The notes below the pieces were generated by a model that ran no database searches, was not told where the DNA came from, and saw nothing but the letters and a program-made list of their open reading frames with translations. Below are positions 3,630 through 34,190 of a stretch of 64,000 bases of DNA, piece by piece; position 1 is the first letter of the stretch; the number at the start of each line of letters is the position of its first letter. The position numbers were made by a program, and so were the translations under genes. Origin of the DNA: Tubulanus polymorphus (taxonomy: Eukaryota > Animalia > Nemertea); NCBI RefSeq assembly GCF_964204645.1, contig NC_134031.1, positions 14,247,807-14,311,806 of the forward strand, read 5' to 3'.

Positions 3630-3874
3630 TAATATTGGGTTGTTCTACTACTAGAATTACAGGTGTTCACTGGCGTCACTAGGATATCTAAGAGGGGGTG
3701 AGAATTGATTGAAGCGGGACTATGCATAATACAAATTTGCTTATCCAGATTACGTCAGACCTTGCGCTTCGTAAAGCTAAACGATCCCTTAAACCTAATT
3801 TTATCCGTGTTGATTCTAACTCTATTCAACGTTAGTCTCGCATTGTTGTCCCTTATGTCCCGTATTTAGACAAA

Positions 3875-4315
3875 TTGAAACCCACTCTCAATGCGCTTAA
3901 CACTGTTATCATATTCAAGTATAATAACAAAATCTCTAGTCATTTATCCAAAAATAATACTCTGTCCAATACTCATGCCGGTGTTTATAAAATCCCGTGC
4001 TCTGATTGTGATAAATTTTATATAGGTGAAACTGGTCGCTCCCTCAGCATTCGTATTAAAGAGCATAAGAAAGATATTATTAATGAAAAACCCCAAAGTG
4101 CTGTGGCTACCCACGTTTGGGATACTAATGGTCATCAATTTGATTTTAATTATTCTCGTATAATTTTTCCGTCTCACAGTATTACCCGACGTCACATAGT
4201 TGAGTCGGCTTTAATAAAATCCCATTCAAATTCCTGTGTCAATGGTAACCTTGGTTTCTCCCCTCGTAATATACTTTTGTCCCTATACATTTCCTCTCTG
4301 GTTAATATTACCTAG
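3875..4315 (+). pseudogene. Penelope-type GIY-YIG endonuclease domain (C-terminal fragment of the RT-EN ORF)
   Basis: GVYKIPCSDCDKFYIGETGRSLSIRIKEH...VATH...IVESALI...N.N.G is the PLE GIY-YIG signature with the CxxC insert. No RT domain, and stops lie upstream. Confidence 0.9.
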
Positions 4316-4383
4316 TTTTCATGTGCAACAGTGTGCGTCGTTCTTACTGGTATATATACTGTGAAATGTCTTAATTTTAGTCA

Positions 4384-4423
4384 CTCTTGAGAATGGTTTT
4401 TAGGATAAAACCGAAAATTCGAG
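4384..4423 (+). ncRNA. Minimal hammerhead ribozyme variant in the PLE pseudo-LTR
   Basis: ctc-TTGAGAA-t-ggtttt[..]aaaacc-GAAA-ATTC-gag: stem I ctc/gag, stem II ggtttt/aaaacc, palindromic AATT in the stem III position; the core deviates from CUGANGA. Confidence 0.6.
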
Positions 4424-4764
4424 GTTTTAAAAAATTCTTTATAGTTTTGATGTTTTAAAATCTCTTTCGAACTTGTGATTGTGGGACTCATATTTCATTC
4501 GTCTCTCGCGATTTATTGCGTAGTTTTATCACGTTATGCATAATACACTTCGTATGTGTCGAGCTCCAAAGACAAACGAGCATTTCTGTATCCTCGAAAT
4601 TACTTGAAGTTTTCATTAAAATTAAACACAGACCTAGGTATTTACTCGACCGTTAAGTGTCCAGTTATATAACCGAGTGTTAGCAGATTTCCTAAATAAA
4701 ACTATTTTTGTTTTATCATAATTTATCTTAATATGTTTGGTTTCACAATAGATATAAGCATTAT

Positions 4765-4905
4765 CGAGCGCCACTTAAAGAGTCAGGAGAATCTGCCAGC
4801 ACTACCGTGCCATCAGCATATAAGAGTAATGATAGCTTCAGAATTCCAATATCAATTCCTTCATAATTTCCGGATTTCACAAAGTTTTCCATATCATTGA
4901 TAAAG
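4765..4905 (-). pseudogene. Non-LTR retrotransposon RT fragment
   Basis: LFINDME...GIDIGILKLSLLLYADGTVVLADS matches the LINE RT motif preceding and including YADD (second D lost). Confidence 0.75.
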
Positions 4906-6405
4906 AGTCCTAATAGTCCTACTATTTGAAATTCGAAGCTTGAGGGGAACTTGCATTTAAAAATGGGGGTCGGCCGCACCACCCGACCGCCCGCTGGTGA
5001 CGCCCATGCGGTTTTTGAATGCAACTATTCGGTTGTCTCTAGGGTAGCTGCAGTGGTCGGGGTTTTACATTTGAAATAAATCGTGTTGTCTGATGAGTGT
5101 TGTTTGATGTCACTTGCCACAGTTGGAACGTCAATATCGTCCGTCGAGTTCTGCCTGTATACACTTTATTTTGATAGCGGCGAATCAGTGAACTTAACAT
5201 ACTGGTCGCATGCCACAGAACGAATACCCCGCTGGTTGATTAGTTTGCATAATTTTCGTTGATTTTATACATAGGGGCAGCACTTGATTGTCAAAATCTG
5301 AACTACTGAACATAGAAATGAAATTTACAATTGATTCTGCAATTCTTGAAAGAATTCTGAATATTTGTGATATATTTTTTCCAGGATTCGTGATATTTTT
5401 TGATTTGTAAGATTTATATACATGCCAGAACGACACTGAAAATGCTTGTTTCGTTCGCCAGACTAAGCGATTTTGTTTTTCGCTTCGGTATTGTGAATTC
5501 AAAGAAAACGGAAAAATCAAAAACAGCTATTTGACACTCTAGTTGTGATGTTTGGGGCTTGTTTTGCTTGTGTAAAACGTAGTTGGTTGGGGTTAATCTC
5601 TAGCATTATTCCCGCATGAACGATTTATTAATTTATCTCGTTGTAAAAGCCTCTGTTCTCTTCACGCTGAGACGAAAAGGCGTCAAGGTAGCTACAATTA
5701 CGTGATGACCGTACTTAAAAAACAAAAAAAAACTTCAAAGACTTCCTCTCTCGTGTTGCGTCGTTGACGAGTGCCAGTCACTCAGATTGTGTACTCCCCA
5801 GGAGGGACTATTTTCCGACTCCTAAGAGCTGACCAATACTACAACAACGCAACCCCCGGTTCGTGTACTTTTCCAGACATCAAACGAAAACAAACACGAA
5901 AATCCGCTGTTGTAGGAAGTTGTAGTCGCGTGATTCGTTGTCGAGGAAGAAAGAAATCATTTTCCGACTGGGGTGAAAATAACGAAGTGATTCTGATTTT
6001 GCCGCAAAGCAAGAAAAAATAGCAATTGTGAAGAACTTTTACAACAGTCAAAAAAAGTTCCGCCATGTTGCTTCGGTTCGGGTTCTTGGAGTGACGTCAC
6101 ACTTCCGCTTTGGGAAAGACTCACCGCGGGCAATTAAAAGTATCATTCTTTTTAACAATAATATTCAAGAATTGCCAAATCAATTTCAATCTACTACTTT
6201 TAATAGAAATTGACCATTATCGATGACGCGATTAGGTTTGAACAGCTTTGTCATGAGAAATACGAAATTTGATCGTCATTATACTTCATTGCTAATGGTA
6301 AGCTATGTACAATGTGTGTTTTAAACTACGTGTGTGCTACAGTGTGTGCGCTACACTACGCTACTACAGATTGTGCGCTATAGTGTGTGCGGTTTTCTGT
6401 TCTAG

Positions 6406-7668
6406 TTTTTAGCCTACTTGGGACTTTAGTCCCAGCGGGCTATTGCGTTCGCTTTTCGTCCGTCGTCCGTCCGTAGACGGAATCCAGCTATTTTGGGAAG
6501 TTTTGAAGACGCTTCAATGTAATGTCTTAATATTTAGGTTACACATATCTACCCTAAACACATCTTCAGCCCAAAAACTGGTTCTGTCAGAATCAAGATG
6601 GCCGACTGGCAGCCATTGTTGTTTGCCAAAATCAGCACTTTTTACACGTTTTTGAACTTTTTGAGGGAAATTTTGAAGACGCTTTGATCAATACCTTGAT
6701 CTTTCGTCTATATTTGAATCCCCCAGGGCCCATAAGCATAACAAAAATTGGGTCGATCGGACTCAAGATGACCGTCCTGTGACCTTTTTAGTGCCCAAAC
6801 ATGTCAATTTTGGCCCGAATTCTGAGTCCTGTAGCTTCCTACTGGTTCGCCATTTCTCATTGCAATTGCTGATGGGTATTCTTTGGAAGGGGATGTTTTA
6901 TACCTGAGACAGGTATTTTTGATCAGCCAATTATGTCGCAATTGGCGGCCATCTTGGTGTTATCAGTACTCACTCGTAGGTGGGAAAAAGTTTTTCGGCA
7001 TTGTATTGATACCTAAGCATATTTTGTTACCCCAATGAATTAAAAAGTGGTAGCTTATAACGTGTCCTATGATTGTGGTGAGTTTCAAGGTCATTGCTTT
7101 TGTATATGGCCACCAGCGGGAGTTGAATAATACAATACCTTAGTATTTCTTTATTATATTTGTACCAATGCATATTTTGTTACCACAATCAATTGCAAAG
7201 CTGGAGCTCGTGACATCGTCTATAATTGTGGTGAGGTTTAAGGACATTAGTCATTCTATATGATCACCAGGGTGCTTTTAATAGTAGAATAGTAGAATAA
7301 CTTAGTATTTCCTTATTATATTGGTACCTAGGCATATTTTGTTACCATGATCAATTGCAAAGTTGTAGTTCATGACGTGTTCTATAATTGTGGTGAGTTT
7401 CAAGGTCATTGGGTTTTGAATATGGTCACCAGGGAGCGTTGAATAATAGAATAACTTAGTATTTCCATATTTGATTGGTAACGAGTCATATTTTGTTATC
7501 ACAATCAATTACAAATCGTAGCTGTTGACATGTTCTATGATTGTGGTGGGTTTCAAGGTCATTGGTTTTTGTATATGGTCACCTGGGGGCGTTGAATATT
7601 GAAATTGTTAGATTGTTGAGCATTTGAAACCACTTCCCAAGTGGGCATGGTGTCCCTGGACCCCTAGT
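6406..7668 (+). mobile_element. Helentron-associated non-autonomous element (HINE/DINE-1-like)
   Basis: 5' T-run, then subTIR GCCTACTTGGGA (6412), (GTCC)n microsatellite (~6458-6475), ~155-160-bp tandem units (~7010-7600), inverted subTIR TCCCAAGTGGGC (7635), a short GC hairpin and terminal CTAGT. Confidence 0.75.
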
Positions 7669-8876
7669 TCTATTTCAGGTCGTTGTCAGAGGTATCGGAA
7701 AGTGAAAATTACCGAATTCAAGGAACAATTTTATTTGAATTGAACACGTTGGAAGCAGGTGCGAGAATTGCATCATGGGAAACGATTTTTCACCACATTT
7801 CCAAGCTGCATATAGGCTCAGACCACTATTCCAAAATCATCCATATCCTATAGTAAAAACAAGAAATTCGAGCGTTGAGTTTATAATAAATAGGCGCGTT
7901 AATTTAGGGGAAATCCTGCTTATGGCTCATCGGCCAGCATCTTAGTGGTTTGGTCCTATCCGCATCTTGAAGCTACCCCAAACAATACCGTCATTAATCT
8001 CAACCATAGGTCTACTACCATTTTGGGTTGCATTTCAAATTCATAATCTGATATGAACATCATTATCCTGCCTATGAATGACGCTTTAAATCCCTGTAAA
8101 CTTCAGCGAACTGTTTTGTAATAAAGGTCACACCAAGGACTCTTATATTACATATCCCTTTCCCTTTCCTGATTACGAATGCTTTCAATGCAGCTCTCTC
8201 AGTTTGATGTTTCCTGTTGGGCGGAGGCAGTTTACTGCCTGGTACAGAGCTGCTTTTATTGAAATGTGGACAGCACGCAATAATATATTGAACTGCAATT
8301 GAACCTAAAAGCGATATTCAGTTTTTCAAACGTCACGCTACCGACTAACAGACACCAATACCAGCATTTATTGAGTATTTATCCGCCCTACCTTAAACCT
8401 TTTATTAATAAACTGTTCACTAAAGCAATAGATTTTTCCTTTCCCATTTTTTGTTTCGTTCTGTAAAAGATAAAGCAAACATGAGCGTATTGCTTGTGCT
8501 TGCAGCAATGCGGGGTCTCCAGCTTGCAAGCATGCACTATACCCCCGTGGCAGACGCTTTACTGAGATTCAGACTACAAACGCCGACCGTATTGACTCAC
8601 TTGCCGAGGGCTGTTTCCATCCGTTAGTTCAGAACTGCCACGATTACCTTTCTAGTTCACCTCAAAAGAGTCAGCATAAAAATAGTTTTGAAAAGATTGT
8701 CGTATTTTTGGGTCAAGTCTAATTTAAGACTCAGTAAACACAACTCATCGTGGAATATCCGCGTTTATGTAACCGAATTTTCCAGAACATATGAAATCAG
8801 CGGATGATCCAAAATACCGCAAAACCTTTGAAAAATGATTGTACCGTACTGAAACGATATGAGTGGTCGTCGATTT

Positions 8877-9598
8877 CGCTACGATAACTCTGATTTAGAC
8901 TCTTGTGCCTAGCTCCAGAATCCGGGATATAAACTTACTTAACTTAACTCGTAGTTTGCCTTTATCTTGTATAATATGAGTATATGTTTATTCCATCATC
9001 CGATTTATAATGTCTTCTATAATGTGTAGTTACAATCCAGCGTAAATCCTATAGTCAACCCGTCTGATCCAGATCCAATCCCTCGGCTATTCTCCCGTAC
9101 GATCCCGATCTGATCTCTCGGAACTCCTGACTAGCTTTTCTCTGCACTTGACTTAGCTCTCACTCCCGTCTAGTTCTCTAGTTCCCGTTCTCTAGTTCTC
9201 GTTCTCTAGTCCACTATCTAGTTCCCCTCTCTAGTTCCCCCGAAACTACTGAACTAACCCTTTTTATCCCCAGAATCTCATCCCAAGTCTCAATCCCTTT
9301 TCATTGGTTAATTACTAAATAAACTCCCCAACATGCTATACAATAATATAACTAAAATACTTTACAAGTAGAGAGATCGCCACTCAAGACCATGGTTTAA
9401 CCAATGTTTATAAAATAATAAGCCTAATGGATACTAACTAAGAATTGGAACAATGAAGCCTAAAGATGCCAGTTTGAAGGGTCTTGAATGTCGATCTACG
9501 CTAAATGTTATAAAAACAGCAGATGTTCTGCCCTAAAGTTACATAAAAATACTTTACAAACAGCATTACTATTAAGCCAAAATAGCTAAATCGTAACA
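8877..9598 (-). mobile_element. Possible solo LTR
   Basis: Ends CGCTACGAT...ATCGTAACA (imperfect TG..CA inverted termini); minus-strand AATAAA and TATA-like tracts arranged as in the Gypsy LTR at 41526; no TSD found. Confidence 0.35.
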
Positions 9599-10130
9599 CT
9601 ACGTATATCCCGTTAAATCGTTCTATGAAAACAGACGCTAGTCTGCCCGGATTATAAGTACGTATACTGCCCGGAGCAGTCCAAATCTCATCCTTGGTCC
9701 CTCATCTTGATCACAAACTGTAACTATACTAATGAGGGTTTGCTAGTTTACTGATCTTCCCGGGCTGAGTTAACATGACGTTCGCAGCTTTTGAGAGGAA
9801 ATCGGGGGTGAAAATGCTAAATTAGAAAAGTCGTCGAATGCAAAATGTTAATTGAAACGAATCAATGAAGGATATGAACTAATCAGGTTCGATTATCGGC
9901 ATGTCCAGTATGGTACAGGTCTATGCAAGCGGGTCGATGATTGGTTAATTAGGATGCGCGACGACGGTTAACTGGGGAGTTATACAATAGCAATACTGAA
10001 AGTGAATGAATCGATGTGAGATGAACCCTTTCTACTATACTCAACTACACATGTTTGATAATCTAGAGATAAAGGTGAAATTTACTTAAGAATGCATTTG
10101 TAAGATAGTTTGGCAAGAACCCAAGTAACT

Positions 10131-10326
10131 ATGTTTATAACAACGTTTCGACTATATCCTAATAGTCATCTGCATAATCTTCATTATTCCTGAAGATGAC
10201 TATTAGGATATAGTCGAAACGTTGAAATAAACTACTATCTCGAAGTTTCATTTTCGGACTTATTATTATCATTGTGGGATTCTCTCTACATCGCGTCAAC
10301 ACGTATATAGTGTTCTAGCAATCGTG
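10131..10326 (+). mobile_element. Short hammerhead-containing PLE-derived insertion with inverted 5' duplication
   Basis: 12-bp TSD ACCCAAGTAACT (10119-10130 / 10327-10338); internal inverted repeat ~10133-10171 vs ~10194-10233. Confidence 0.8.
10184..10230 (+). ncRNA. Minimal type I hammerhead ribozyme
   Basis: ttattc-CTGAAGA-t-gacta[ttaggata]tagtc-GAAAC-GTT-gaaataa: canonical core, stems I and II, palindromic AACGTT stem III region. Confidence 0.8.
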
Positions 10327-10339
10327 ACCCAAGTAACTG

Positions 10340-10660
10340 TTCTCCCACCACGGCTGTGAGGTGAGGGGTTCACCGAAAACCTGTTGTTGTGACTGTTCTA
10401 CTCGCTGCTTTAGAACCACAGTTAGTGGCGGTTGTGTGAGAGGAGGGGGTTCACCGAGAACCTATCGTGACTGTTCTACTCGCTGCCCTAGAACCATCTA
10501 GTCAGTTGTGTGAGGGAGGGGGTTCACCGAGAACCTGTTGTGACTGTTCTCGCTGCTCTAGAACCACGGCTGTGAGGAGAGGGAGTTCAGCGAGAACCTA
10601 TTTTGACTGTGACTGCTTTACCTGCTACTCTACCACCACAGCTGGGGAGGGGGTTCTATT
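10340..10660. repeat. Diverged tandem repeat, ~70-80-bp unit
   Basis: Recurring GAGGGGGTTCACCGAGAACCT..GTGACTGTTCTACTCGCTG..TAGAACCA. Confidence 0.8.
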
Positions 10661-11909
10661 TTACTTGCGGCGTCCGACCATGTACGGAGCCTGAGAGAGG
10701 AGGTCGGGCCCATCCAGTTTTAAAAGATAGGCCTGGTGTTCACCGATAACCCGTGCTATCTATCCTAATTGCTACGCACCCTCCATAGTTTGGGCGAAGT
10801 GGCCATGAAAAATCCAAACCATCGGTCTACTGCAAATTTCTTTGTTGTTTTCTGTAAAACAATAACATTAATTCCTCTCTTTAGAACTGTTGTTAAAAGC
10901 CTATTTCTATGATCAACGATTTATCAAATAAAATCAATTTTCTCTCTATAAATCCTCTGTTCGCAGTTTATACTTATGTATTCTGAATAAAATGTCAACT
11001 GAAGCTGTCATCATCTATCATAATAGTTGACCTGCTTAGGTTTGTATTGAGTACATACTAAATACGTCTAAATCGAAAGCAATTCGCGGAATGTGATGAA
11101 TGGATTTATTGAAGCGTGAACTCAGCTGTGATTCTGTCCATCAGATACTATAGGTGATGAGAAATGAGGGAGGGCTTACACAGTCAGATTTTCTATCATA
11201 TCTAGGAGGGATGATGGACTGAGAGAAAGGTCGGTAAAGCGATGTGGTAGCAGTGACTGATATTGACTGAGGAGGATAAATAAATCGTCTCTCTTGCGGC
11301 ATGAGCGGCTCAAACTTGTGTGTGGCGGCGGCGTTGCACTTGTCATCGATACCACCAACCCCGTATCGTATTAGTTCGATCTGACCTCTCCATCTCCCCC
11401 TCAGTCTCCGCTTCTCTCTCGCTGTGAGACATATCATTGGCGTTGCTGATAAAACCACATTTAAAACTCTCTCTAGCCTCATCTCGCGTGAAAACAAACA
11501 CAACTTTTTCATTCTCAATTTGCTCGGATCTACGAGCAATTATCTCAATTGCAATTGCTCGTAGCTCGGATTAAGTGACGCACATAGAAGGAAGAAAAGG
11601 TAGGAATCTAATCTATGTTCCCCCTTATTTTCATCTTTTGAAACTGTTTGTGATTGACTTTATGACACGTCGTTCTCTAGATTCTGATGACTTTGAAATC
11701 AGGTTGGTACCTGATGGAGCAAGCATAATTATTGTGAATTAGTATTCCTATAGTCCCCTATTGCTTGTCCATCGAGAAAGTATTCTTTTGGTTAAATGTC
11801 TATACTGAGAGGATTACGAGGTGAAAATTGGGACGGTTAAGAATCGTTTTACTGCTTGTCAGTCACATGTCCAAAACATATATTACTTAAACACATATTG
11901 AAGTAGACT

Positions 11910-12039
11910 TCCTAGGGAGACGCCAGAAGAAGTACCAGGAGAAGAATTCCACACCTGATGATGGCTGTTAGTCAACAGCCAAAATGTTGTGGTTTCGTCT
12001 TAGTAAATTTTCATCATATACAATTCTATTGTGGGACCG
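11910..12039 (+). mobile_element. 130-bp hammerhead-containing insertion (decayed core)
   Basis: 10-bp TSD GAAGTAGACT (11900-11909 / 12040-12049); cac-CTGATGA-tggctg[ttagtcaa]cagcc-AAAAT-GTT-gtg at 11952-11991; same family as the 24.5-kb element. Confidence 0.75.
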
Positions 12040-12094
12040 GAAGTAGACTAATGAGTTGCAGCTGGATTGGGTTAGGGGTAGCGGGTATAGTTCA

Positions 12095-13111
12095 CATTCA
12101 TAAACCACATACAACAAATCAAAATAGGCAACTTTGAACTTGAAAGAGTAAAACAAATAGATTTCCTCGGCTTGACAATACATGAAAATCTGAACTGGAA
12201 ACCACATATCGACAAAATACACAAGAAAATTTCACAAATTACTGGTATCATAAACAAAACTAAAAACATCCTAGACACACAAAATTTACTTTCTCTTTAC
12301 TACACCTTAGTCTATCCTCATTTGAACTATGGCTTGTTGGCTTGGGGCCACTCGCCTTATAATAAAAAATGCCTCCTATACCAAAAGAAGATTGTTCGAA
12401 TAATCACCAACTCTAAGTACACTGCACACACAGACCCACTTTTTAAAAATCTTGAAATCCTCAAAATCAATGATGTCCTCATCCTTAAAACTGCACTTTT
12501 TATTCAAAACACCATCAAATCTTCACCCCATTACTTTTATAATTACTTCACCGCGGAAAACTTATCTCCTTTAGTCAACATCAGAAAAAGCATATATTTA
12601 GACCACACATATTCTTTATTTTCAAAACAAACACCGCCAACCCCGCATCAAAATTCACCTCAAAACATTCTTTCAAACATCTGGCAAAAACTACCTTTTT
12701 CCAATGACATCCTACAAACAAGCAAACAAAATTTAAAACGTAAACTCAGACCATATCTCACCTCCGCCTACAATGATATCCATCAATGTAATAACCCTAA
12801 TTGTTATAATTGCTCACTCTCCTGAACCCTCTAGCTTACTCATATAAACTCTCCTGAAATTATCAAAAATCATCAACTTTCATTTCCTTCCCCTTTATTT
12901 CTTCATTTCCCTTTCGTTTTTTTTCCCTGGGTGCTTGCGACAGCGGCCTAAAGGCTTTGCTTGGCCCACACTGAAAGCTACTGTTCTCTCTCTCTTTTTA
13001 TAATTGTGCTTTGTTTAAAAAAATTGTAAATTTTATTGTTTGTTTTCTCTCAACCTATGTACATAGCCTGTCATGCTTTCTGTGAAATAAATTTGAACTT
13101 GAACTTGAACT
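12095..13111 (+). mobile_element. 5'-truncated LINE (CR1/L2/Crack-like): ORF2 C-terminus plus 3'UTR
   Basis: ORF 12172-12825 (FLGLTIHENLNWKPHID...LYYTLVYPHLNYGLLAWG...QKKIVRII...HTDPLFKNLEILKI) is typical post-RT sequence; ends in AATAAA plus a (TTGAAC)n tail. Confidence 0.85.
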
Positions 13112-13145
13112 AGTGGCCATGCTGTACACTGACCATACGGAAAGG

Positions 13146-13836
13146 TGTTGCGATGTAAGTCAATTGTAGTTGGATTACGTACTTCGAGTCATCACGGGAA
13201 GCGTGTAATTAGTGAAATTGAGTTCTCGATTGTGACTGGGCGATTTGTACATACGTAGCGATTCCTCCTTTACAATGAGGGTCTTCAATTTGAGAGGGGC
13301 TCACATAGATACCGCGGGTATTGTAGCTGTGCACATTGACTACAGAGGACGGGACTAGCCTCACATATACACTACCTACCCGGTGGCATTCACTGGAGCT
13401 ATAGATATAGTTTTGTGTCCATTGTTCCCATAGTAATTTCCCTGATAAGATCAAACATTATAAAACTGCGGCTGCTAGTGCTAGTGCTGGTGCTATAACA
13501 ACTAGGAATATGGATCTATTTAGACATAGATTTCGAGACACTAAGTCGTTTATCATTTAATCAGTTTGTTCATTGATTAGTGTCAATCTGAGTATGACAC
13601 CTGACAACGCCTGTCTCTGCCAAACTCAGACTGACTGTCTCAACTTATATTGTCTCTGGTTGAGACTGCTCAATTCATAGGAATCTAATGTGAAACATAT
13701 TGTACTGTCTTTGTTTTTGTTTGACTACCTTGTATGTGTATAAATGTGATGTGTAATGTGCTGAACAGAAGAGATTGTATGATTGTCGACCACTCTGGAT
13801 AAAGAATAAAACTACTATATTGAATATTCTACAACG
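13146..13836 (+). mobile_element. Possible solo LTR
   Basis: TGTTG...CAAC(G) ends, internal TATAAAA (~13459) and AATAAA (~13805); no TSD found. Confidence 0.3.
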
Positions 13837-14014
13837 GTTGTCCGTTTGTTAATCGCCATCCAGCTACGTCCCCCTTGCAACTATACGGAAATTTAGGTTG
13901 CTACAGTGCTGCGGCACCACAGCTGCTGCGTCTGCTCTCTGTGTGTCATATCATGACGTGCATTCGTCGTGTTAATATAATCATCTCTTAATATCGACTT
14001 AAATCGGTCGTGAT

Positions 14015-14250
14015 TGACCGTAACTGACCACTACGGGAACGAACTGACCACTGTGGCAAGTGACCACTACGGGAACCTGACTGATCTCGGCAACTGACCA
14101 TTATGGGAACGAACTGACCGCTGCGGCAAATTGAATGACCACTGCAGCAACCTGACCACAGGAACAAACTGACGACTGCGGCAGCTGACCTATACGGGAT
14201 CCCGACTGACGACTACGGGAACTAACCTCTCCTCGGACAACTGGCCACTA
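14015..14250. repeat. Diverged short tandem repeat
   Basis: Repeated CTGACCACTACGGGAAC / CTGACCACTG(C/T)GGCA units. Confidence 0.75.
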
Positions 14251-14547
14251 GAGGGAAGTGAACGCCTAGGAACGTCATTTCAACTAGATTCTGAAATTTA
14301 TCTTAAATTTTTCACTAAATTTTCTATCAATATTCAAATGAATATCAAACACAGAATTTGGTATAAGAATAAATGCTATACAAAATGAATGGATTCACAG
14401 CTTTTTCTATTTATTTTTCCCTAATTTTTGCATAATCATTTTATTGTAGAATTTTCATTTTTTGTGATAAATTTGTAATTCGAATTTATGCAGGTGTGCA
14501 GCGGTATTATCTAAGATAGATTTTTATTTTTCGGACAAATCTTGATA

Positions 14548-14810
14548 TCAGATTAGTAGCTGAAACGTGGCGACTTGGTCCTGTCTGATTGTATAGTTGA
14601 CTAGTCGGACTGGTCCTGTTAAGAGTCTGTTTTTAAGGGTATCTCTCCAGCGTCCGGCCGGTATGTATATCTCCCGTTCAGTCGTGTTCGGCTGTAGTAT
14701 CGGAGCAACGAGGAGTTTCTTACCGATCATAAACTGATCGTCTGCGGCTTGTTGAATAGCTTGATCGTCTGTGGGATGCGCCCACCAAACCGGGCGGATT
14801 AACGGCGCAC
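14548..14810 (-). CDS. GH31/MYORG-like protein, terminal coding exon
   Basis: Acceptor ...ttccAG| at 14812-14811; translates as (G)APLIRPVWWAHPTDD...DQFMIGKKLLVAPILQP...IYIPAGRWRD, the conserved GH31 C-terminal motifs; phase-1 junction keeps frame with the upstream exon. Confidence 0.9.
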
Positions 14811-15178
14811 CTGGAATGTAAACATCAATTACTGATATAAAAGGGAACCTTATTAGACAAATTTATAGATTAAAAACAAAATCATTGATCAAATTAAGAC
14901 GTGTCGTTTCGGAACATCACGGGATCTGGTTCCGCAAATTAGAAACCAGTTCCACAGTTCAGAGCGCAGGAGGGTTATGATTTGACTCAGTTAACTCATC
15001 GGAAATTGAACTTATTTGTACTTACAACTACGTCTCTGGGAATTTGACGCGTACAATTCGTTTTCAATTTGTTTATAGTGGTTAAAATATAACTGCTTGC
15101 TTCAAAATGTATTCTTTAAAAGATTCGATAAGTTTGGTTCTACATTTTTTTGATTCAACTTTTAAAAAACTTCATTAC

Positions 15179-16721: not shown

Positions 16722-18449
16722 TTTTTAAACTACACAAACTGTAGACAGGACTATCAGCTGGACTGTTGATGGATTGTCAGATCGGGTCTTGCCGACTTAA
16801 TGATTCTTGACGGTTTTCGGATGTTTACGATGCTGAAAAATACAACGAAAGAAAAGCAAAATGCACCTTACTTTTGAGACTGCTGTAGATTTATACATAT
16901 ATCACCGAATTGAGAATCTGTCCCCACAGTTACAGTTCTCTGTTTGGCTCTAGAATTTCCAATATTTTGAAATATAATCAGATTTCAACAGACAACTGTG
17001 CGAATGGTTGCAGCAGAAATGAAAGATTATTCCAAATAGAATTTTTTAGTAAAATCCACAATAGGCATGAAGAGCGGTTTACCCTGATTTGACCGGTAAC
17101 GAGCGAGGCGCCATTTCGACTGTATTCTAAATTCATGTACGTGTGTGAAGTATTACGACTATTCAACCGCTAATTCATGCGTAGTCACGCATTGTATTGT
17201 TAGTATCGGCTCCACGGATATTTGGGTATCAGCTGGTTTATTGTATATGAGATGTAACTTGATGTTTTTTCGCAACCTGATAGATTTGTTTCACATATTG
17301 TGCGCGCTCTCGGCAGATCGATAAAGCCGTCACACTGACAGAAGTCTATAAATCAGGGGATCAGTCAATTCGTAGACTTACGATATGCCCCAAAATATCA
17401 ACCTAATCCTATTCTGAGTCTGATCATTTGTATTGATATTTCATAGCTCATTTGTTCTATAGCTTTATAATTGTATTGGACATAAAACTCTACCGGCACG
17501 CTAAAAAGAAAACATAAGTCTCAACCCTTCAGGAAAGCATAATTATGATAAGACAAACTTATGGCAGCCCTTTCACTTTCAATGACTTCAACAAGGTGAT
17601 TTGATCGTAGTTAACTCGGTAATACTGGCTCCAGATGCGTTAAATGTTGTTTAGGAAGACACCGATTGTTAACCCTTTAAATTCATGACTAAAGATCTAA
17701 TGTTTATTGTCAAATATTTTGTCGGTTAAATTTGAATCTGTCGATCAAAATACTAGAATAATCATAGCCTGTCATTAAATCGTTTTTCATGACAATATTT
17801 TGACGTTGATTGCGACAAAATGCAAATTTAATTCGTTGATAGAATCGAAAAAGTAACAGTCTGTTGACAGCGACCATGACGGAATTATCTTTCGAAAAAA
17901 ATATTAGCTCCGATCATTTTCTCCGGGAAATGAAAGATGATGGCAGCAGCTGAAAGGTAAATTGTCGCGGAATTAAATTGTCATTATTCATAGAATGCTG
18001 TCAAATAAAGTATAAATCCATGTCTGAAAGTGTCACAATGTCAGAGCCCACTGAATGACGGATAATAGATAGGAATTGTCGCCACATGGTCGTATCTCAT
18101 CTCACTCAATATTACTCCAAATGTCAATTCTTGTTTTTATCCTAATTTATTGTGAGTTGTTGCTTAAATTTCTTATTTCACAAAGATATCCTTGGATTAA
18201 GTTGTGGCTAATGATTCTAAGCTTAGGACCCAGTTCTACAGTTCTGGCGCCGATTCCACTGTGTTCTCAATTCAGAAAAAAATTGAAAAAATTAAAAAAC
18301 AATTAATTTTCAAATCATATTTACTGGCAACTGTGGATCGTTTTTCGGATCATGTATAGAATATGGTAATATAGTCCCTTATTGCGGAAGCTTAAGGTAA
18401 AATGAGAGAATGATTCGGTTCATAATTCTGTATTTGAATTATATATAAC

Positions 18450-18725
18450 ATTGGCAATCCCGACATTCCGACACTCCCGACGTTCCGGCAATCCGACGTA
18501 CTCGACAATCCCGACATGCCGGCAAACCGACATACCCGACAATTCGACATACCACGATTCCAGCACCTCTCTACAGGGGATTATTAGGAACCGAACGCCC
18601 CACGATCCCGGCACCTCTGTACAGGGGAATATTAGGAACCAAACGCCCCACGATCCCGGTATAATATCAAGAACCGAACGCCCCACGATCCTAGGGGAAT
18701 ATTAGGAACCAAACACCCCACGGCT
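18450..18725. repeat. Short tandem repeats
   Basis: ~9-10-bp CCGACA-type units followed by longer GGAACC(G/A)AACGCCCCACGATCC units. Confidence 0.75.
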
Positions 18726-18837
18726 CAACTCCAGAACAGGTAAAAGTAGATCTGCGGGTTGGTTCCAACATTTTCACTGAGAAAAGTATTAATACGCGCA
18801 GATCGATAGAAGGGGGCACGTGAAGTAATTTTCAGAA

Positions 18838-19445
18838 GTCGACAATCGGCAATCGGCAATCGGAAACCTGATAGTCGACCATTTCTCGGGTCGGCAATCG
18901 GCAATCAGAAACCTGACAGTCGACCATTTCTCGGGTCTGATTTAACTCTTTCCCTCATATTGCTTCAATGCGCTCTATTTTTGCAAGTTCGTGAATGGTT
19001 TGAACAATGATGGCTGTTTCTATGTTGCTTACAACAGATTGTGAGGGTGATATAGATGCTGCGATTGTGAGGGCGATATAGATGCTGCGTTTGTGAGGGT
19101 GATATAGATGCTGGGATTGTGAGGGCGATATAGAGGCTGTGATTGTGAAGGCGATATAGATGCTGTGATTGTGAGGGCGATATAGATGCTGCGATTGTGA
19201 TGGCGATAAAGATGCTGCGATTGTGAGGGTGAAATAGATGTGATTGTGATTGTGAGGGCGATATAGATGCTGTGATTGTGAGGGCGATATAGATGCTGCG
19301 ATTGTGAGGGCGATATAGATGCTGTGGGTGACTGGTTTCTGATTGCCGATTGTCGATTCGAGAAATGGTCGACAGTCAGGTTTCTGATTGCCGATTGCCG
19401 ATTGCCGACCCAAGAAATGGTCGACAATCAGGTTTCTGGCGGCAA
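18838..19445. mobile_element. Foldback/MITE-like element with repetitive inverted arms and an internal 26-bp minisatellite
   Basis: Arms (GGCAATC)n-GAAACCTGA-GTCGACCATTTCTCG at 18838-18935 are inverted at ~19333-19445; GATTGTGAGGGCGATATAGATGCTGC array at ~19037-19325. Confidence 0.65.
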
Positions 19446-19709
19446 TTTGAAACCGAACCACTCCCCTCATTTAAGAAAACCCTGCACGATGGAACTATTT
19501 TGACCTATTCAGGAGTTGAACCGTTCAGGGGCTATCCCAGACAACTCTGTAGATCGGAATATTGGAACCAAATTGCCGTATCTTTAATAGCGTTCACTCG
19601 TAGTACGTATTTCGTGAATTATTCGTAATCGATGCCCAAGGGGATTGAAGCGTAAAAATCATTTCCAAAACATTTCCAAACATTTTCTAAATTTTGTCAA
19701 ACTAACGAT

Positions 19710-19806
19710 ACTGACGATGTTGGTGATGTTGACATTGTTGGCGATAATGACGTTGTTTACGATGTTGACGATGATGACGATGTTGATGATGTTGTCGATG
19801 TTGTCA
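19710..19806. repeat. (GATGTTGAC)n-like microsatellite
   Basis: Degenerate 3/9-bp periodicity. Confidence 0.7.
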
Positions 19807-21204
19807 AATATTTTTGAATTACTACACTGCGTTGTAATTCGTTTATCGGTGAAAAGTCTTGTGACTTCTTAACCGGGTACTGGAGTTGAGCCGAACTTTT
19901 GAATGGGATGAGCAATGATTCAAAAGTTGAATTATCGGGAAGACGATATCAATGTTTATAACTTCACCAGCGCGCATTGTTGCATTAACTTTATGATTGA
20001 GTGATATCATAAAAAATTATTCGCTGAGTTCATCGATATTTTTACTTAGTTTCTATCTTAGTCCAATCCAGAGATGAACGAAATAAAAAAATTAAACGGG
20101 GGAAAATAGGAACAAAAATTCAACAATGCGGACCCAGTGGGTTCTCAAAAAATGCCGCCTGGAAACTGTGAAAAGGCTTGTTTACAGTTGCAAGTTGCAT
20201 AGCTACTGTTTTCATATGAAAAACCATTGATTTCTATCGAGTTTAAATACAATTTCATATTTGAGAAGTCAACACTTGTCGGTCTGTTAGAGTAAATAAT
20301 AGAATTATTCAATTTCCGAAAAGCCGTTGGCATAAATTCAAATATCAGTTATACAGCAAGAAAATATAATCAATTTTGAATGTGATAACATTTTGTTGAA
20401 TGCCAAAAAGTAACAGAAGCTATAACGATTTATCGATTTCATTCCGAGTGTTGTTGATTATTAACACATGATTTCAATTTATTCATATCTCACTGTATAA
20501 AATACGGTCGTATGAATATCCCGAACAAAAGTTATTTCATAATAAGAATTGAAAATTACTACAAATTGAAATTTCATCATTGCTAAAAGATATCGCAAAT
20601 TCATAATGCAAATTCATAATTGAATCCTTAAGATATAACAAATCGAAAGTTCATTAATTCAAAAAAATGCAAGGTGCGCAGCGGAAAAAATATATTACAA
20701 GTTAGGCCAAGTTCGTCGCACAGTTCCAATATCATGGTTTGAATTTTGAAAATATAGAAGATGTTAAAAGATCATTTACTCTGAAGTTCATGTTTTTAAC
20801 CGTATTTTTACCTAGAGGATAGGCAACATTGGCGCTAGCATGCCGTCAACTTACTGTGGCAATCGGGGAGTCGAGTTGTGGTGGACCGAAACAATGTGGG
20901 AAAAAGGAATTTCTGGCATTGTTTTTTATACAGGTTCGTTACCACCTAGTCGTGTTATATTGATTTCGCCGATTCATATTCAACAAAATGAATCGCTTGA
21001 AAACAGGTGCGATTACTCGACTATAGATATCAGCAAAAATACATAAAGACTCCTCTTTATGTATTTTTGATACTAAAATATCATATACGCGGAGAGGGAA
21101 ATCGAGTGTGAATCATCATTTTAGCGTTTACCGAGGATTTGATAAAATAGCTAATTTCGAACCGTACACTCGCACGCACATTTGTCAACAGTGCGGACGT
21201 TTTG

Positions 21205-21610
21205 TGATCAGTGCAGTGATCAGTCAGGTGTGGTGACTGGTGAACAGAAAGGTGTGGTGACTGGTGACCAGCCAAGTGTGGAAACAGGTGACCAGTCAGG
21301 AGTGATGACTGGTGACCAGTCAGGTGCGGCGACCGCTGATCAGTCAGGTATTATGACTGCTGATCCGTCATGTGTATAGTGACTGGTGACTGCTGATCAG
21401 TCATGTAAGGTGACTGTAATTGACCAATCAAGTAAAGTGGCTGATGACCACTGAGGCATGGTGACTGGTGAGTGCTGACTTGTCAGGTGTATTGACTGTT
21501 GACCCGTTAGGCAGGGTGACTGTTGATCAGTTAGGTGTAGTGACTGGTGACTAGTCAGGCATGGTGACTAGTGACCAATCAGGTATGGTGACTTGTGACT
21601 GCTGATCAGG
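21205..21610 (+). repeat. 24-bp minisatellite
   Basis: GGTGACCAGTCAGGTGT(A/G)GTGACT units; same family as 37065-37620 in the opposite orientation. Confidence 0.85.
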
Positions 21611-21934
21611 TTTGTTGACCATTTTGGGCCTTCAGTCACGACTCGACAACAAGGTTCAGATGTTTACATGTTATTTGACTCAATAAATATGTGGCTGCAT
21701 CATTTATTTTTCAATCCCGGTTTTATAGCGTTATCGACGGTGCAAATAGCACATTACAGCGAGGTTTAATGTCACAATCTGTGACATTAAACATTCATCT
21801 GTAATCAATAAATGCGACATGGAGACCTATAACAATTCCATAAAATACAGATTCGTGGTCGGTTTCAATTAGAATTTAGTCATTCACGTCAAATATGTGT
21901 GGTACCTATTACCCGCTCCGCGTGGAAAAATAAA

Positions 21935-22285
21935 CTCAATTGTGGAACTGGATCCAGAGTCGAATTAAACCCGCATTACTGTGGACCTGGGTGCAGTATC
22001 GAATTAAGTCCACGCAACTGCGGAACTGGGTTCAGGGTCAAATTAATCCTACATTACCCCGGAACTGGATCCATAGTCGAATTAAGTTCGAACAACCGCG
22101 GAAATGAGTTCAGAGTTAAATCAATCCCACACGTGTGGAATTAGATCCAGAGTCAAATTGAGTCCAAACAACTGTGGAACTTGGTCCAGAGTCAAAGTAA
22201 ACCCGCACAACTGCTGAACTGGACCCAAATCAAACCCATGCAACTGTGGAGTTGGGTCCACTGAACCCACACAACTGTGGAACCG
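21935..22285 (+). repeat. ~39-bp tandem repeat (CTGTGGAACTGGGTCCAGA family)
   Basis: Repeated CAACTGTGGAACTGGATCCAGAGTC(G/A)AATTAA; related pieces are dispersed through the window. Confidence 0.8.
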
Positions 22286-24550
22286 CGCGATATCTCGGAG
22301 GTTATAGTTATATAGTTATAAGCTATATGGCATAATAGATTGTCCATTCATCGACAGTCAGTCGGTGTGCTGGTGATGGGAGGCTCCTGCTGTATTGTAG
22401 TAAAACTACTGTAGTATATTGAATAACGACGACAGGAATCAATACTGAAGGTTTATGATTAATCCTCAAATATGCACAATAATTAAAGCGAATGATATAA
22501 GACGGATTCTTACATAAACACCTCGAGGGAGATTGGAACCTAAGATAAGACTGCAGTGTCTGCTGCTGCTGCTGCTGCCGCTGCTGCGGATGCTGCTGCC
22601 GCTAACGTATGTCCTAATACTGAGCAATTCGCATCTATCTACTAATAGATAAATGTAAATTCATCATCTTTCACTTTGATCTCCATTTGGACTCGGTGAA
22701 ATGGGTACAGTTGACTCCTCCAGTAGTCCGCATCCGCGGGACCGATGCGGGTTCATACAGTGCTGCAGAAAAATACGTTATAACCCTGACTACATTCAAT
22801 AAAACATGTATCAAACATCAATATATCAAATATCAATATATCAATATATCAAAATCTGATAATTGCAATATCAGGTGACAGGAAATTCGTCAATAAATTC
22901 CTTCACATATTTCAATATTTATCATGCAATAACTTAATTGGTTGAATTATACATTAGTTCATTGATATCAGCAATCAGTAGTGTAACGCACATAACGCCA
23001 ATCTAACAACTTTAAAACCAGTCGAAGCTGTCGGTCAAGTTTAAACTCAAATTTAAACTCAAACATAAATTAAACTCAATTTCTTTTGGTTTAATTGGTA
23101 TTGGTGGTTACTTAAATGAAGAGAACATTTCAAACTTAAGAATTTAGGCTGAAACTTTTTCGTTGACCTTGAACTGTGTAAACTGAGTCCGCGGAGAACT
23201 GTTTCCAATCGGCAATACCCGGTACACTCTTTGACGATTCGCAAACGCGACGAAAATACTGGCGCAGAAGATAAACGATTTTCCAGCATTATGGATTTTT
23301 GACCGGTGCAACACGGATTACTCCTGGTTAATTCTGCAGAGGATTCTTAGGGATAAGCGGGACGAGAGCTTGAAAGATGAAAAAGAAAATTGACCTCAGA
23401 CTCAAAAACCCTATTGTTTCGTTATTACCAATACTCGGTGACCGTTTATGTGATCTACTACTTATCCACACTCGACATTATCAACTATTGTCTTCAAGAG
23501 TTCCGTTATGTGGAAGGCATACTGTATCATCGGGCTCTTTTTGATGTGCGAATAAAGTTCAGGAGGTGGCTTTATGTTAATATCGAGTCTCCGAGTGTCA
23601 TTAAAAGTTACCATATTTGTACAAATTGTCCCACTACTTTACTTAGAAAACTTTGTACAATGTTTAATGCAATACCACAGTCGTTAGAAGATTTGACTTT
23701 AAAGTTTAAACATTTATGATTTCCATTCATTTAGCTGATGAAGCTACTCTTCACTAGCAACCAAACACGACTACCTGTTTACTCAGTTTACATGGTTTAT
23801 TTAAGCGAAGGTTCGTACTTCAAATGAATCTAGTTAACCTTAACCCGTTTTCAAAGCTAAAAGATTGCAAATAAACAAATTAGAACTGTAGGTTAAATTA
23901 CACTGTGTTGAGCTTAAAATTCTAAATTCGAACTTGTTCGCGAACCGGACTTATTGTTTTAGGAATGACTGTGAACTGTTAAGTGACCTCACGATACCAG
24001 AACCACTCCTGATTGATGATGTTTACTAATTCTGTGTGATAGTCCATCCCCCTCCCTAATGGCATCTTGGTCCCCATGCTGTTTAATTGATAACGCTTGT
24101 TAATTGGCTTTTAGTTGCATCGTCGTGTTTCACAATATCTACCGCTAGATAGTTCTTCGAATAAATACGTACTATGTTAGCAGAGTCGGCAGAGTAAGAA
24201 AACCAAACTGTCTCGTAGTAATGGGGTTTACTTGTACAGCACCGCACAACAAATCAGTGTTTGACTTTAAGTCACTCATAGAATGGTATGAGAAATAGGG
24301 CGGGAGCAGACACAGTACGAGGGTGGCGGAAACATGCTGTGACCGGTATTGTACGTTCCGTGGCCGATCTGTAGCTATAACGCCCAAGAGTCACTGACAG
24401 CACTCAGTATAGAAATTCCCCCAAACGCACATAGATAATTGTCGAATAAACACTATAATCCGTGTATACTGTAGCAACCTGACTGTAGATAAATGAAGAA
24501 ATCCCACACTTCGAATTTAAAATTATACGATCAAATTTATTATTATGAAA

Positions 24551-24588
24551 CCACAACGTTTCGGCTGTTGACTAACAGCCATCATCAG
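24551..24588 (-). ncRNA. Hammerhead core (canonical; 5' strand of stem I missing)
   Basis: Minus strand reads CTGATGA-tggctg[ttagtcaa]cagcc-GAAAC-GTT-gtgg; the upstream AATG cannot pair with GTGG. Confidence 0.7.
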
Positions 24589-24592
24589 CATT

Positions 24593-24634
24593 CCACCTGA
24601 TGATGGCTGTTAGTCAACAGCCGAAGCGTTGTGG
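24593..24634 (+). ncRNA. Minimal type I hammerhead ribozyme (GAAA->GAAG substitution)
   Basis: ccac-CTGATGA-tggctg[ttagtcaa]cagcc-GAAGC-GTT-gtgg; stems I and II are intact. Confidence 0.72.
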
Positions 24635-27479
24635 TTTCATAATAATAAATTTGATCGTATAATTTTAAATTCGAAGTGTGGGATTTCTTCATTTATGCAC
24701 ATAGATAATCTGGAGCAAAAGAACTCGAGCGGTTTCACAATCAGTTGAAATAAATCTTAGTTCTAATGTTTAACTCTATAGTCCTAACTTGGAACTATGG
24801 AACAGAATCCTGGTGGCGGATTGGCTGCTTGCAGTAACACCCTTTTCGCTTCATTTTTTGGTGCTTATGTATGTTACTTCGAGACTTTGTAATTTTTTGA
24901 CGCCTTATAAAACGTTACCATTATGAAACCTAAACAATGTTAAGCATTCAGCGTCATTTTACAAACGAAAACCGTAAATCGATGGGCAAAACGTCACAGG
25001 TCTATGTGTACACATACAAGCTATTTGGCAAAGTATTATTGACAAAGATGTAGAATGTCTTCCTGTGATTATATAATGAGCTCTATTTGAACGTCGAAAT
25101 GTTATATTGCATTGAATATCATGAGAAGACGTATTGTAATAGTAATGGATGTATGAATATATCAGAAGCGACAGGTATAAATAGAAATGATAAGTAAATC
25201 GGATAATTCGGTCAAAATCGCGGTTGTATACACGATGCGGAAGTCTGATATAAAAGTCAGACCCTGACAGATTGCCAAATTCAATTAAGTTACAAATCTT
25301 AAGATAAGAAAATACAATATACAAAACACAAGTTACAAATTTGAAAATAAGAAAATACAACATACAAACACATGCGTAATTCATACAGAATAACATAAAC
25401 AAGCTATTTCAAATGACGTCCACTTTAACCCAGACTCAAGAGGATATCGAGTGGCAGCCAAACCGAGTGGGCTAGGCCACACGATATGCTCCAAAGTCAT
25501 GATGAAGCAGACATCAGAAGAGCTCTTTCCTCAGCCATAGGCAATGAAGTTGCAGACCAGCTTAGAGGCAAAAGGGAAATTGACAATTTTTAATTACAAA
25601 AATTAAACCACTATTTACAGTCGAAGGCCTGTATCACCTACCCAATCGCCAACTCTCATAATTCCCCAAATTTCTTAAAACTTCTATTTCAAATTTGCAA
25701 TCCCACGTTAGCTAATCCCAAAAAGTCTACATTTTTTTCGAAGGCGTCAAATAATTTTTTAAAATTAATTTTCTTTTTTCTTGCTCCATTTGCTAGAGGG
25801 ACCATGCTGTAAGTTATATGCTGTTGGGAGGAGGGCACAGTGGGATGCAGTGGATCAATTACTCCTCCGTTTGACTTTTAGGGCTATTTCTGGTGCTTTT
25901 ACATAACATGTTTTATAGACGTTGAGTGTGCTGAGTTACGTAATTGATCACCCTGAGAATAATTGATATCCATACGCTACTGATATAGACCGCGTTGGTG
26001 CATTAGTTCGGTCGCTTAATGAGTAATATGTTCTGCCTTGACTTCTGGGATTCGAACCCATCGGTCGTCGATTCGTGTAAGTAATTGCTTTCCTTTTCAC
26101 ACGGATTAATTCCCAATTCTCAGACGATCTACGGAGAGTCCACTCAATTAATTAGACATATGAATAACACCGCTTTACTCTCGTGTGGCTTTCTGGGGCC
26201 GGAGTTTACACGATAAAATCTGACACCTGATGAGTAGGTCACTACTCATCCGATGAAGCTACTATACAATATTTAACCGTTACTGGACCCAGGAACCTTA
26301 TTCACTAACGTTACGCAAGTTGTCGTGGATGATTTGCGTTACGAGACCATTTACGATGAATATCAGTTTGCGTTGCGTGGTTTTCACTTAACTCCTCGCA
26401 AAGAGTGAATGGAACTAGCCCACAACTGTAGAACTAAGCCCATTACTATGAAACTGAGTCTAGAGCTGTGGATCCTGAACTGTGGAACTGGATACTGAAT
26501 AGTGGAACTAGATCCAGACCAGATTTTGATGTCAATTGGGATTTCACCTTGAACTCGATTTGCGGACAGCGACAGCAGCCATTACGTGCCGTGGATCACG
26601 TGATGACCGCGCTGCAGTAGCAGACGATGCTGTTGTGTTATTCACACTGACATGAATTGACAAGGACAAAAATCGATGTTTGTAATCAAAGTCTGAGGGT
26701 GACAATTCCCAGAAATGCTATTATCGAGAAATAATGGACGAGACAGTCCAGTGAATACCTGATCTTATTGTCTCTTTCTTTCTAATACATGGTGGCTGCA
26801 CTTTTCGGCAAAATACGAGCATATCTAGCAAAATAACGTAGTCTTCTGTTCTGAATTCTTGTGGTGACCTCATTGAAAACAATTTGTATTTGAATTTATT
26901 CATCATCAAATAAACAATTATCATATTTACATTAACATAACATTTCAAATCATCCATGATGGGAATGGACGCCGTACCTTTCTTATACGTAACTTCTGAT
27001 TGATTTTATGATTTTGGTATCGAGAATACGAGCGTTACTTGCGTGAAAAAAGAGAGTTTAAGGGTGCCCCTTACTTCATACAGATCTGCGAGAATTCGTT
27101 ACAATTTCCCCGCTTTCAAATTTAAGGGATTTTTTCGAGGAGGGGATATATCTGTACAATTCGTTTAGAGTTCAAACATCAAAGCTCGTTTAATCAAACC
27201 TGCCACCCCTCGTTAAATTACGTCTTCTGTGAATATTTTTCATTCCCGCCTTCTAGTCTATCTATTCACGTCTCCTGATTATGACGTACCTCCTAATTCG
27301 ATTTGGAGTCAGCGATTAAAAAACCATTCCCGATATAAACGTTATTATCGTGTTACAAGATGGGAATTGACTGACATCGTCGAGTGCTTCAGACATATAC
27401 ACAGAGATTGTCGTGTAAAGTGCTGTATTACAACACTTCGCACCAGAGAGCACTTATAGAAATGGGATTATTCTATAAA

Positions 27480-29420: not shown

Positions 29421-29466
29421 GGTAGTTTATTTCAACGTTTCATCTACAGTAGACATCTCCGGAATT
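29421..29466 (-). ncRNA. Degenerate hammerhead copy (10.2-kb family)
   Basis: Minus strand ttc-CGGAGA-t-gtctac[t]gtagat-GAAACGTTGAAATAAACTAC; the 3' part is identical to 10216-10235. Confidence 0.5.

Positions 29467-33444: not shown

Positions 33445-34190
<746 letters not shown>

Follow-up and report, generated by a model that had tools for sequence, protein, structure and literature searches.

Short hammerhead ribozyme insertions in the nemertean Tubulanus polymorphus as likely insertion by-products of Penelope-like elements

A 64-kb stretch of the Tubulanus polymorphus genome (contig NC_134031.1, C7:14247807-14311806; hereafter the window) raises the question of how short insertions that encode no protein, and that carry little more than a hammerhead ribozyme motif, come to be scattered through a genome. 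Four insertions in the window, E1 to E4, combine such a motif with flanking target site duplications (TSDs). E1 is a truncated Penelope-like element (PLE) with an endonuclease frame; E2, E3 and E4 are mini-insertions (minis). An earlier note, made from the letters of this DNA alone, had proposed that the minis are either a retrozyme-like system mobilized in trans by PLE enzymes or extreme 5' truncations that stop reproducibly near the ribozyme. Here we report that the minis are insertion by-products of endonuclease-bearing PLEs active in the genome and not an independent class of element. We consider it likely that they are run-off complementary DNAs (cDNAs) of the PLE terminal redundancy, primed on both strands of the target and then joined.

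The search target was a 268-Mb, 77-contig assembly. In each genome DNA search 40 of 553-1146 first-look candidates were scored, and 90 genome loci were read beyond the window (labels of the L000 type, e.g., L083). Copy number was estimated with 30-mer or 31-mer patterns allowing up to 2-3 mismatches, with the reversed patterns as controls.

Target site duplications, arms and junctions

TSDs of 13, 12, 10 and 13 bp had been reported for E1 to E4, and all four were confirmed by script as exact matches. E4 (24440-24696, plus strand; TSD left 24427-24439, right 24697-24709) is a head-to-head mini-insertion with arms at 24489-24588 and 24597-24696, separated by the junction CATTCCAC at 24589-24596, and a 49-nt tail confined to the left arm (24440-24488). 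E2 (10131-10326, plus strand; TSD left 10119-10130, right 10327-10338) joins a short inverted arm, across a junction, to a tailed sense arm. TGTGGGA lies at 10273-10279 of E2, and the family alignment places the short-end position at ~10289 and a 37-nt tail at 10290-10326. The window copy of E2 is atypical, its inverted arm being cut short; typical family members are 242-261 bp long. E3 (11910-12039, plus strand; TSD left 11900-11909, right 12040-12049) is a single-arm insertion, with an E4-like arm, the core from 11955 and TGTGGGA at 12030-12036. Among the scored genome candidates, the first 42 nt of E3 (11910-11951), which lie inside the TSD, matched nothing other than an overlap of 6 nt. 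This extension may represent filler, or may result from switching to a different RNA template at the arm's 5' end. BLAST within the window divides the minis into two sequence families, E2 versus E3/E4, in agreement with the earlier note.

E1 (3734-4534, plus strand; TSD left 3721-3733, right 4535-4547) is a 5'-truncated PLE that ends in the long, tailed 3' end; the inverted arm is absent from this copy. It retains the C-terminal GIY-YIG endonuclease frame (3875-4315, plus strand, 146 amino acids; Pfam PF01541, 22.6 bits, exactly at the cut-off), for which there are at least 1003 first-look relatives genome-wide. The 3' untranslated region (UTR) contains, all on the plus strand, a TATA box, TATATATA (4351-4358), read from the sequence and kept in the family alignment; an initiator-like TCAC with its A at 4383, the first T of the TATA box lying 32 nt upstream (-32); a minimal hammerhead (4387-4420); TGTGGGA with a short alternative 3' end ~12 nt past the motif (4480-4498); and an optional tail of 36 nt (4499-4534). 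The last two features were defined from the family alignment. Both 3' ends are used in the E1 family, the short end ~12 nt past TGTGGGA, where many copies stop (query position 762-766), and the long end 36 nt further. The 36-nt tail corresponds to the PLE tail described by Frangieh et al. 2024 (PMC11167929) and Craig et al. 2021 (PMC8557442), and the pair of 3' ends to the two neighbouring reverse-transcription start sites that the former study demonstrated in vitro.

The pattern counts gave 2674 genome matches for the E2 type, 473 for the E4 type and 89 for the E1 type, with 0 matches for each reversed control, so the very high copy number suggested by the earlier note is borne out. Exact TSDs of 11-17 bp were found in 17/23 distinct copies of the E4 family. 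In the E2 family, 22/28 copies have TSDs of 9-15 bp (mode 13), compared with a maximum of 8 bp in the null of 560 flank shuffles. E4-family copies consist of two arms ending 13 nt past TGTGGGA, with the 49-nt tail on one arm only. In typical E2-family copies the inverted arm runs from ~10 nt past TGTGGGA and the sense arm adds the 37-nt tail, which is one-sided in 28/28 typical hairpins scanned. In every hairpin sampled the tail (36 nt in E1, 37 nt in E2, 49 nt in E4) is restricted to one arm. Head-to-tail arrays were not seen among the four inserts or the 53 sampled family copies, which occur as single or inverted units, dispersed and with TSDs. Variable TSDs, the one-sided tail of 36-49 nt, inverted arms and identity to PLE 3' ends together uphold the connection to PLE machinery that the earlier note had drawn.

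Comparison of junctions in 23 E4-family and 30 E2-family copies revealed that the arms are near-identical between copies and that the centre varies, with small deletions, fillers of 1-30 nt and mirrored forms, whose complete arm is the opposite one. Junctions differ even among copies that have the same subfamily substitutions, and both arms of any one copy carry the same subfamily substitutions. Conserved arms around a variable centre indicate that the hairpin is not copied as a unit, and that each insertion joins two cDNAs made from a single RNA variant. The head-to-head hairpins are built anew at each insertion. Amplification as a hairpin unit was considered and rejected, as the junction varies between copies with near-identical arms.

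This bears on whether the minis are foldback or miniature inverted-repeat transposable element (MITE)-like DNA elements, or a hairpin retroelement copied whole, which we regard as very improbable. The near-perfect palindrome of E4, with a 100-bp stem and a folding energy of -171.5 kcal/mol, and the similar total lengths of copies would fit such an origin. However, TSD length is variable (9-17 bp), an unpaired tail of 37-49 nt keeps the inverted repeats from reaching one of the two ends, single-arm copies such as E3 and versions with long spacers exist, and the centre differs between copies in which the arms are conserved. The reading is largely refuted by the variable junctions.

Inverted hammerhead pairs of the E2 type are separated by 38 bp to 2.4 kb, and those of the E4 type by as much as 3.2 kb. 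Pairing by eye of the first 100 exact E2-type matches listed gave 19 inverted pairs, 8/19 at 38-66 bp (minimal hairpins) and 11/19 at 111 bp-2.4 kb. This spectrum indicates a discrete minimal class, together with ordinary 5'-truncated copies that each have an inverted arm of the terminal redundancy.

Two exceptional arrangements were encountered at individual loci. Three E4-type minis, L018, L024 and L026 (C3:19.77 Mb, C3:13.85 Mb and C6:18.40 Mb), have common flanks and a common junction, and on this sequence evidence they are copies made by segmental duplication rather than separate insertions. At L057 (C6:705380-705770), partial E2-type arms are arranged in tandem and inverted within 400 bp, forming a local array of hammerhead arms, not a simple hairpin.

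Hammerhead motifs and coding relatives

A minimal type-I hammerhead motif is present in all four inserts. The earlier note had claimed a minimal hammerhead fold in each, which stands for the motif and has to be qualified for the core, as E3 and the plus arm of E4 each have a single core mutation (AAAA for GAAA in E3; GAAG for GAAA in E4, where other family copies have GAAA). The E2 hammerhead (10190-10223, plus strand) has a fully canonical core, CUGAAGA-U-GACUAU...AUAGUC-GAAA-CGUU, with the palindromic ACGU and a predicted cut after GUU. The minus-strand arm of E4 is likewise canonical, with C3 at 24588. In E1, the core UUGAGAA represents the U3-A8 covariant of the C3-G8 pair and is conserved across the family; stem II is GGUUUU/AAAACC, followed by GAAA and the palindromic AAUU, with the predicted cut after C4420. 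The U3-A8 variant has already been described for PLEs (PMC4209133). A third family, F3, is represented in the window by a longer PLE tail fragment (36060-36290, minus strand) with a TATA box, CATTCAC and a canonical hammerhead (C3 at 36224, stem II GCUACUA/UAGUAGC, palindromic AGCU), and L088 holds a hairpin mini related to F3.

Across the window and the 90 loci we recognized eight tail families, each with its own perfectly paired stem II beside the same core. The core CUGANGA...GAAA, or its U3-A8 covariant, is intact in E2, the E4 minus arm, F3, E1 and four further families. In an alignment of one representative from each of the eight families, 80.8% of cells in helices I and II are paired, versus 31-45% in slid registers; double changes occur in 9/10 helix pairs, and 0/500 shuffles score as high. 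Helix I has 3-6 bp in five families, and F3/G4 are without a clear helix I. In most families helix III consists of a palindrome of four nucleotides (ACGU, AAUU or AGCU), in agreement with the published dimer model of PLE hammerheads.

The earlier note had named Rfam hammerhead models as a check. None of the four inserts had a match to an Rfam hammerhead family, whether the cut-off was the gathering score or E<=10; the only matches that the scans returned were spurious, sub-threshold and microRNA-like, and fell on the palindromes and a repeat at 2.6-3.5 kb. Our hammerhead calls are for this reason based on the motif descriptor and on covariation. The miss may be due to the near lack of a helix III in PLE hammerheads of the minimal type. 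Cleavage by published PLE hammerheads is weak or requires protein (PMC11167929, PMC4209133), and a transcript through a mini would, on the predicted fold, form a 100-bp duplex that buries the ribozyme.

In the E4-type single arm L002:1634-1745, the predicted RNA 5' end AUUCCAC is complementary to GUGGGAU at the reverse-transcription start, and shorter versions of this complementarity with TGTGGGA occur in E2 and E1. The corresponding panhandle in the single-arm fold had z = -1.9, which is not significant alone, and we make no claim for it.

The arms can be traced to coding elements. L083 is an internally deleted PLE with a reverse transcriptase (RT) motif and the C-terminus of the endonuclease (EN), in which the stop codon is followed by a 308-nt 3' UTR and then by a segment 95% identical to the E2 arm with tail. 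At least 10 endonuclease matches, some of them in intact 833-codon frames, are followed by the E2-type 30-mer 320-325 nt downstream. E2-type direct repeats occur 2857-2863 bp apart (e.g., C2:13167879/13170736), and a three-copy tandem of these repeats is found at C2:15726133-15731854. By coordinate arithmetic, the 833-codon open frame starts just after the 5' hammerhead, and within the E2 arm one frame, read by eye, is open across the spacer, TGTGGGA and tail. The published layout of the Anolis element, with a hammerhead followed by a frame open through spacer and tail, is the same. The evidence for RT in the source elements consists of the motif fragment in L083 and the 833-codon frames, the latter by coordinates only. 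For the E4 type, the 30-mer lies 226-229 nt downstream of 3/3 endonuclease matches examined. Judged by these sequence relationships, the minis are the ends of coding PLE families.

A candidate transcription start at the inner arm ends

The inner arm ends are CATTATTC in E2, CATTCCAC in E4 and CATTCAC in F3/G4, and lie 7-8 nt upstream of C3 in these families and ~4 nt upstream of U3 in E1. Each inner end bears an initiator-like TCATT/TCAC motif. In the PLE context of L083, the C/A of the E2 end corresponds to -1/+1 of TCATT, and TATATATAT starts at -31. The pseudo-long terminal repeat (pseudo-LTR) is known to hold the transcription start in Penelope and Chlamys (PMC8557442). We suggest that the inner end is the transcription start of the template RNA. 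For E1, the TATA/initiator arrangement predicts an inner end 10 nt upstream of A9 in each arm, giving ~20 nt between the two A9 positions, and in a genome pattern search four E1-type minimal hairpins had A9-A9 distances of 20, 21, 23 and 24 nt, while a further one had a distance of 4 nt.

The earlier note had named randomly distributed 5' breakpoints, in copies that are all fragments of full-length PLEs, among the observations that would speak against its proposal. The inner ends of the minis are fixed, and variable truncation is found in the sense copies of the E1 family, where scored genome copies match E1 positions 1-801, 102-801, 216-801, 420-801, 525-801 and 617-801. Of the two alternatives in that note, 5' truncation with a reproducible stop near the ribozyme fits best; the stop does recur, and is better explained as the 5' end of an RNA.

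Two E1-type copies begin at the ends of other PLEs. A 5'-truncated copy at L083 1356-1560 starts exactly at the tail end of an E2-type element, which belongs to another PLE family, and one at L066 2199-2302 starts exactly at a G3-type short end. This suggests insertion into those ends or template switching there.

A stop at the ribozyme would also be expected if the minis were ordinary 5' truncations produced by a reverse transcriptase that stalls, or switches template, at a folded or dimerized hammerhead. The breakpoints do lie at the 5' edge of the structured ribozyme in every family, and three E1 inverted arms joined to long copies stop inside the core, at A8/A9. However, the same ribozyme is traversed in the 3' repeat of long and full-length copies, which makes an obligatory polymerase block unlikely; the breakpoints coincide with TCATT/TCAC, ~31-32 nt downstream of the TATA box in E2 and E1; and the E1 arm spacing of 20-24 nt was predicted from TATA and initiator before it was found. 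We therefore rate stalling as rather unlikely.

It is also unlikely, in our estimate, that the minis constitute a retrozyme-like non-autonomous lineage, i.e., short and possibly circularized ribozyme RNAs with families of their own, mobilized in trans by the PLE enzyme. Minis encode no protein and would need an enzyme in trans in any case, they form discrete families of hundreds to thousands of copies, and animal retrozymes have been proposed in the literature to be PLE derivatives. Against these points, the arms match the 3' ends of coding PLE families, minis begin at the predicted transcription start and do not include the upstream TATA region, they are inverted and dispersed rather than head-to-tail, and their junctions are remade at each insertion. 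Among the E1, E2 and E4 family copies sampled, no arm or truncated copy starts at the predicted ribozyme cut site. An independent lineage, the first alternative of the earlier note, thus gives way to the terminal repeat of coding PLEs. Ribozyme-cleaved RNA as the template was rejected on the same grounds, since in these sampled copies the predicted cut site is never the start of an arm or truncated copy.

The preferred explanation, run-off cDNA synthesis from the PLE terminal redundancy (R), can be set out as follows. Each arm would be a complete DNA copy of R, comprising the start site, hammerhead, spacer and reverse-transcription start, the last lying 10-13 nt past TGTGGGA or, with the tail, 36-49 nt further. 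PLE RNA initiated at the pseudo-LTR start would have R at its 5' end and, if full-length, R again at its 3' end. A dimeric GIY-YIG enzyme would make staggered cuts in both target strands, giving rise to the TSD of 9-17 bp, and each target 3' OH would prime a cDNA, on one strand from the short start site and on the other from the long one. A cDNA from the 5' R, or from a short read-out transcript of any PLE 3' end, would run off after ~150-190 nt. Two such run-off cDNAs joined head-to-head by microhomology or filler DNA would produce a palindrome with one tail, and one run-off cDNA joined to one long cDNA would produce the classic inverted arm with a truncated copy. Hammerheads would be present in the minis because the ribozyme sits inside R. 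The template may be full-length RNA or a short read-out transcript. Priming on both strands is proposed by analogy with published in vitro work, in which both strands are cut and extended by a PLE enzyme, with synthesis initiated internally at a pair of adjacent sites ~90 nt downstream of the hammerhead (PMC11167929). PLE insertions typically have an inverted copy and a tail on one side (PMC8557442), and minimal hammerheads have been described in pairs on opposite strands (PMC4209133). Since the minis do not contain the TATA region, they are probably dead on arrival.

Several observations weigh against this explanation. The spacing of the TATA box, canonical in E2 and E1, is looser in F3 (~-33 to -37) and G3 (~-25), and in the three E1 insertions that combine an inverted arm with a long sense copy the arm fails to reach the predicted start by 8-9 nt. 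The assignment of the transcription start is based only on motifs and cDNA ends, and the connection between E4 and coding PLEs consists of coordinates and the 30-mer only. Some junction types recur, e.g., CATCAT/CATTCCAC in six copies, and inheritance in place of repeated formation could account for part of this. The sampled copies are also skewed toward query-like sequences, because 40 of 553-1146 candidates were scored in each search.

Further copies had been placed by the earlier note at 29.4, 36.2 and 50.9 kb of the window. The copy at 36.2 kb has an intact core and belongs to the third family, F3. The others, both found by BLAST on the minus strand, are a degenerate E2-like hammerhead fragment (29422-29470) and an old, diverged E2-like single arm with ~70% identity and a degenerate core (50914-51025). 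Elsewhere in the window, positions 2600-3530 form a block of short direct and inverted repeats built from CGCGAGAA-TTCAAAAC-like units, with many sub-threshold Rfam matches to microRNAs and small RNAs. Strong GC skew of opposite sign characterizes 30000-34000 (-0.34 to -0.41) and 50000-54000 (+0.28 to +0.63), and GC content is raised in the first of these blocks only.

Relation to known systems and implications

Canonical endonuclease-bearing PLEs of the Penelope/Poseidon type, including the Anolis Poseidon element (PMC11167929, PMC8557442), resemble the sources of the minis in having the hammerhead just upstream of, or overlapping, the frame start. They have in common with the minis a reverse transcription that begins ~55-110 nt downstream of the hammerhead, at two sites that define an optional tail of 30-40 bp, as well as the one-sided tail, the inverted copy on the 5' side, variable TSDs and a transcription start in the pseudo-LTR. 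In contrast to these elements, insertions with two R-only arms are the commonest class here (8/19 inverted pairs among the 100 listed E2-type matches). The alignment of inner ends with a TATA/initiator pair is a point that we did not find spelled out in PMC11167929 or PMC8557442.

The minis also resemble a second system, in which minimal hammerheads lie in pairs on opposite strands at distances of 100-700 bp and single motifs derive from truncated PLEs (Cervera and de la Pena 2014, PMC4209133). The shared properties are the type-I fold with a helix III of 1-2 bp and a palindromic loop, the U3-A8 core, massive copy number and an association with PLE terminal repeats. The boundaries, TSDs, tail asymmetry and junction variability of the short palindromic copies were left undissected in that study. 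Metazoan non-LTR retrozymes (Cervera and de la Pena 2020, PMC7229834; Li et al. 2026 preprint, 10.64898/2026.07.22.740005) are, like the minis, noncoding with a type-I hammerhead, related to PLE pseudo-LTRs and presumed to depend on PLE enzymes. Retrozymes, however, are head-to-tail tandem repeats of ~170-400 bp that give circular RNAs, whereas minis are dispersed, inverted and flanked by TSDs, and unlike retrozymes they appear unable to propagate themselves. PLE-type insertion products are thus known already; what is added here is that junctions form de novo, that the minis are tied to coding families, and where the start site is predicted to lie.

A more speculative proposal, which we think improbable, is that each PLE 3' end with a TATA/initiator pair is a small gene for a capped RNA of ~150-190 nt that starts with the hammerhead and is the preferred trans-mobilized template of the PLE enzyme, with the palindromic minis representing a distinct class of parasitic RNA. 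If this were true, the genomic copies would record the transcription start and both reverse-transcription starts of each PLE family, and the 5'-terminal ribozyme would decide between the fates of capped mRNA and template.

Little is understood about the mechanism of PLEs, and in vitro reconstitution has been achieved for a single enzyme. Run-off from the terminal redundancy would make the T. polymorphus minis a set of thousands of natural insertion products, the ends of which appear to mark the 5' terminus of the template RNA, the two reverse-transcription starts and priming on both strands. The anatomy of the minis agrees with the in vitro model of PLE insertion and yields predictions open to test, namely where transcription starts and that the tail is one-sided. 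For genome annotation, ribozyme palindromes of this type are PLE fragments, and not new elements, MITEs or microRNA genes.

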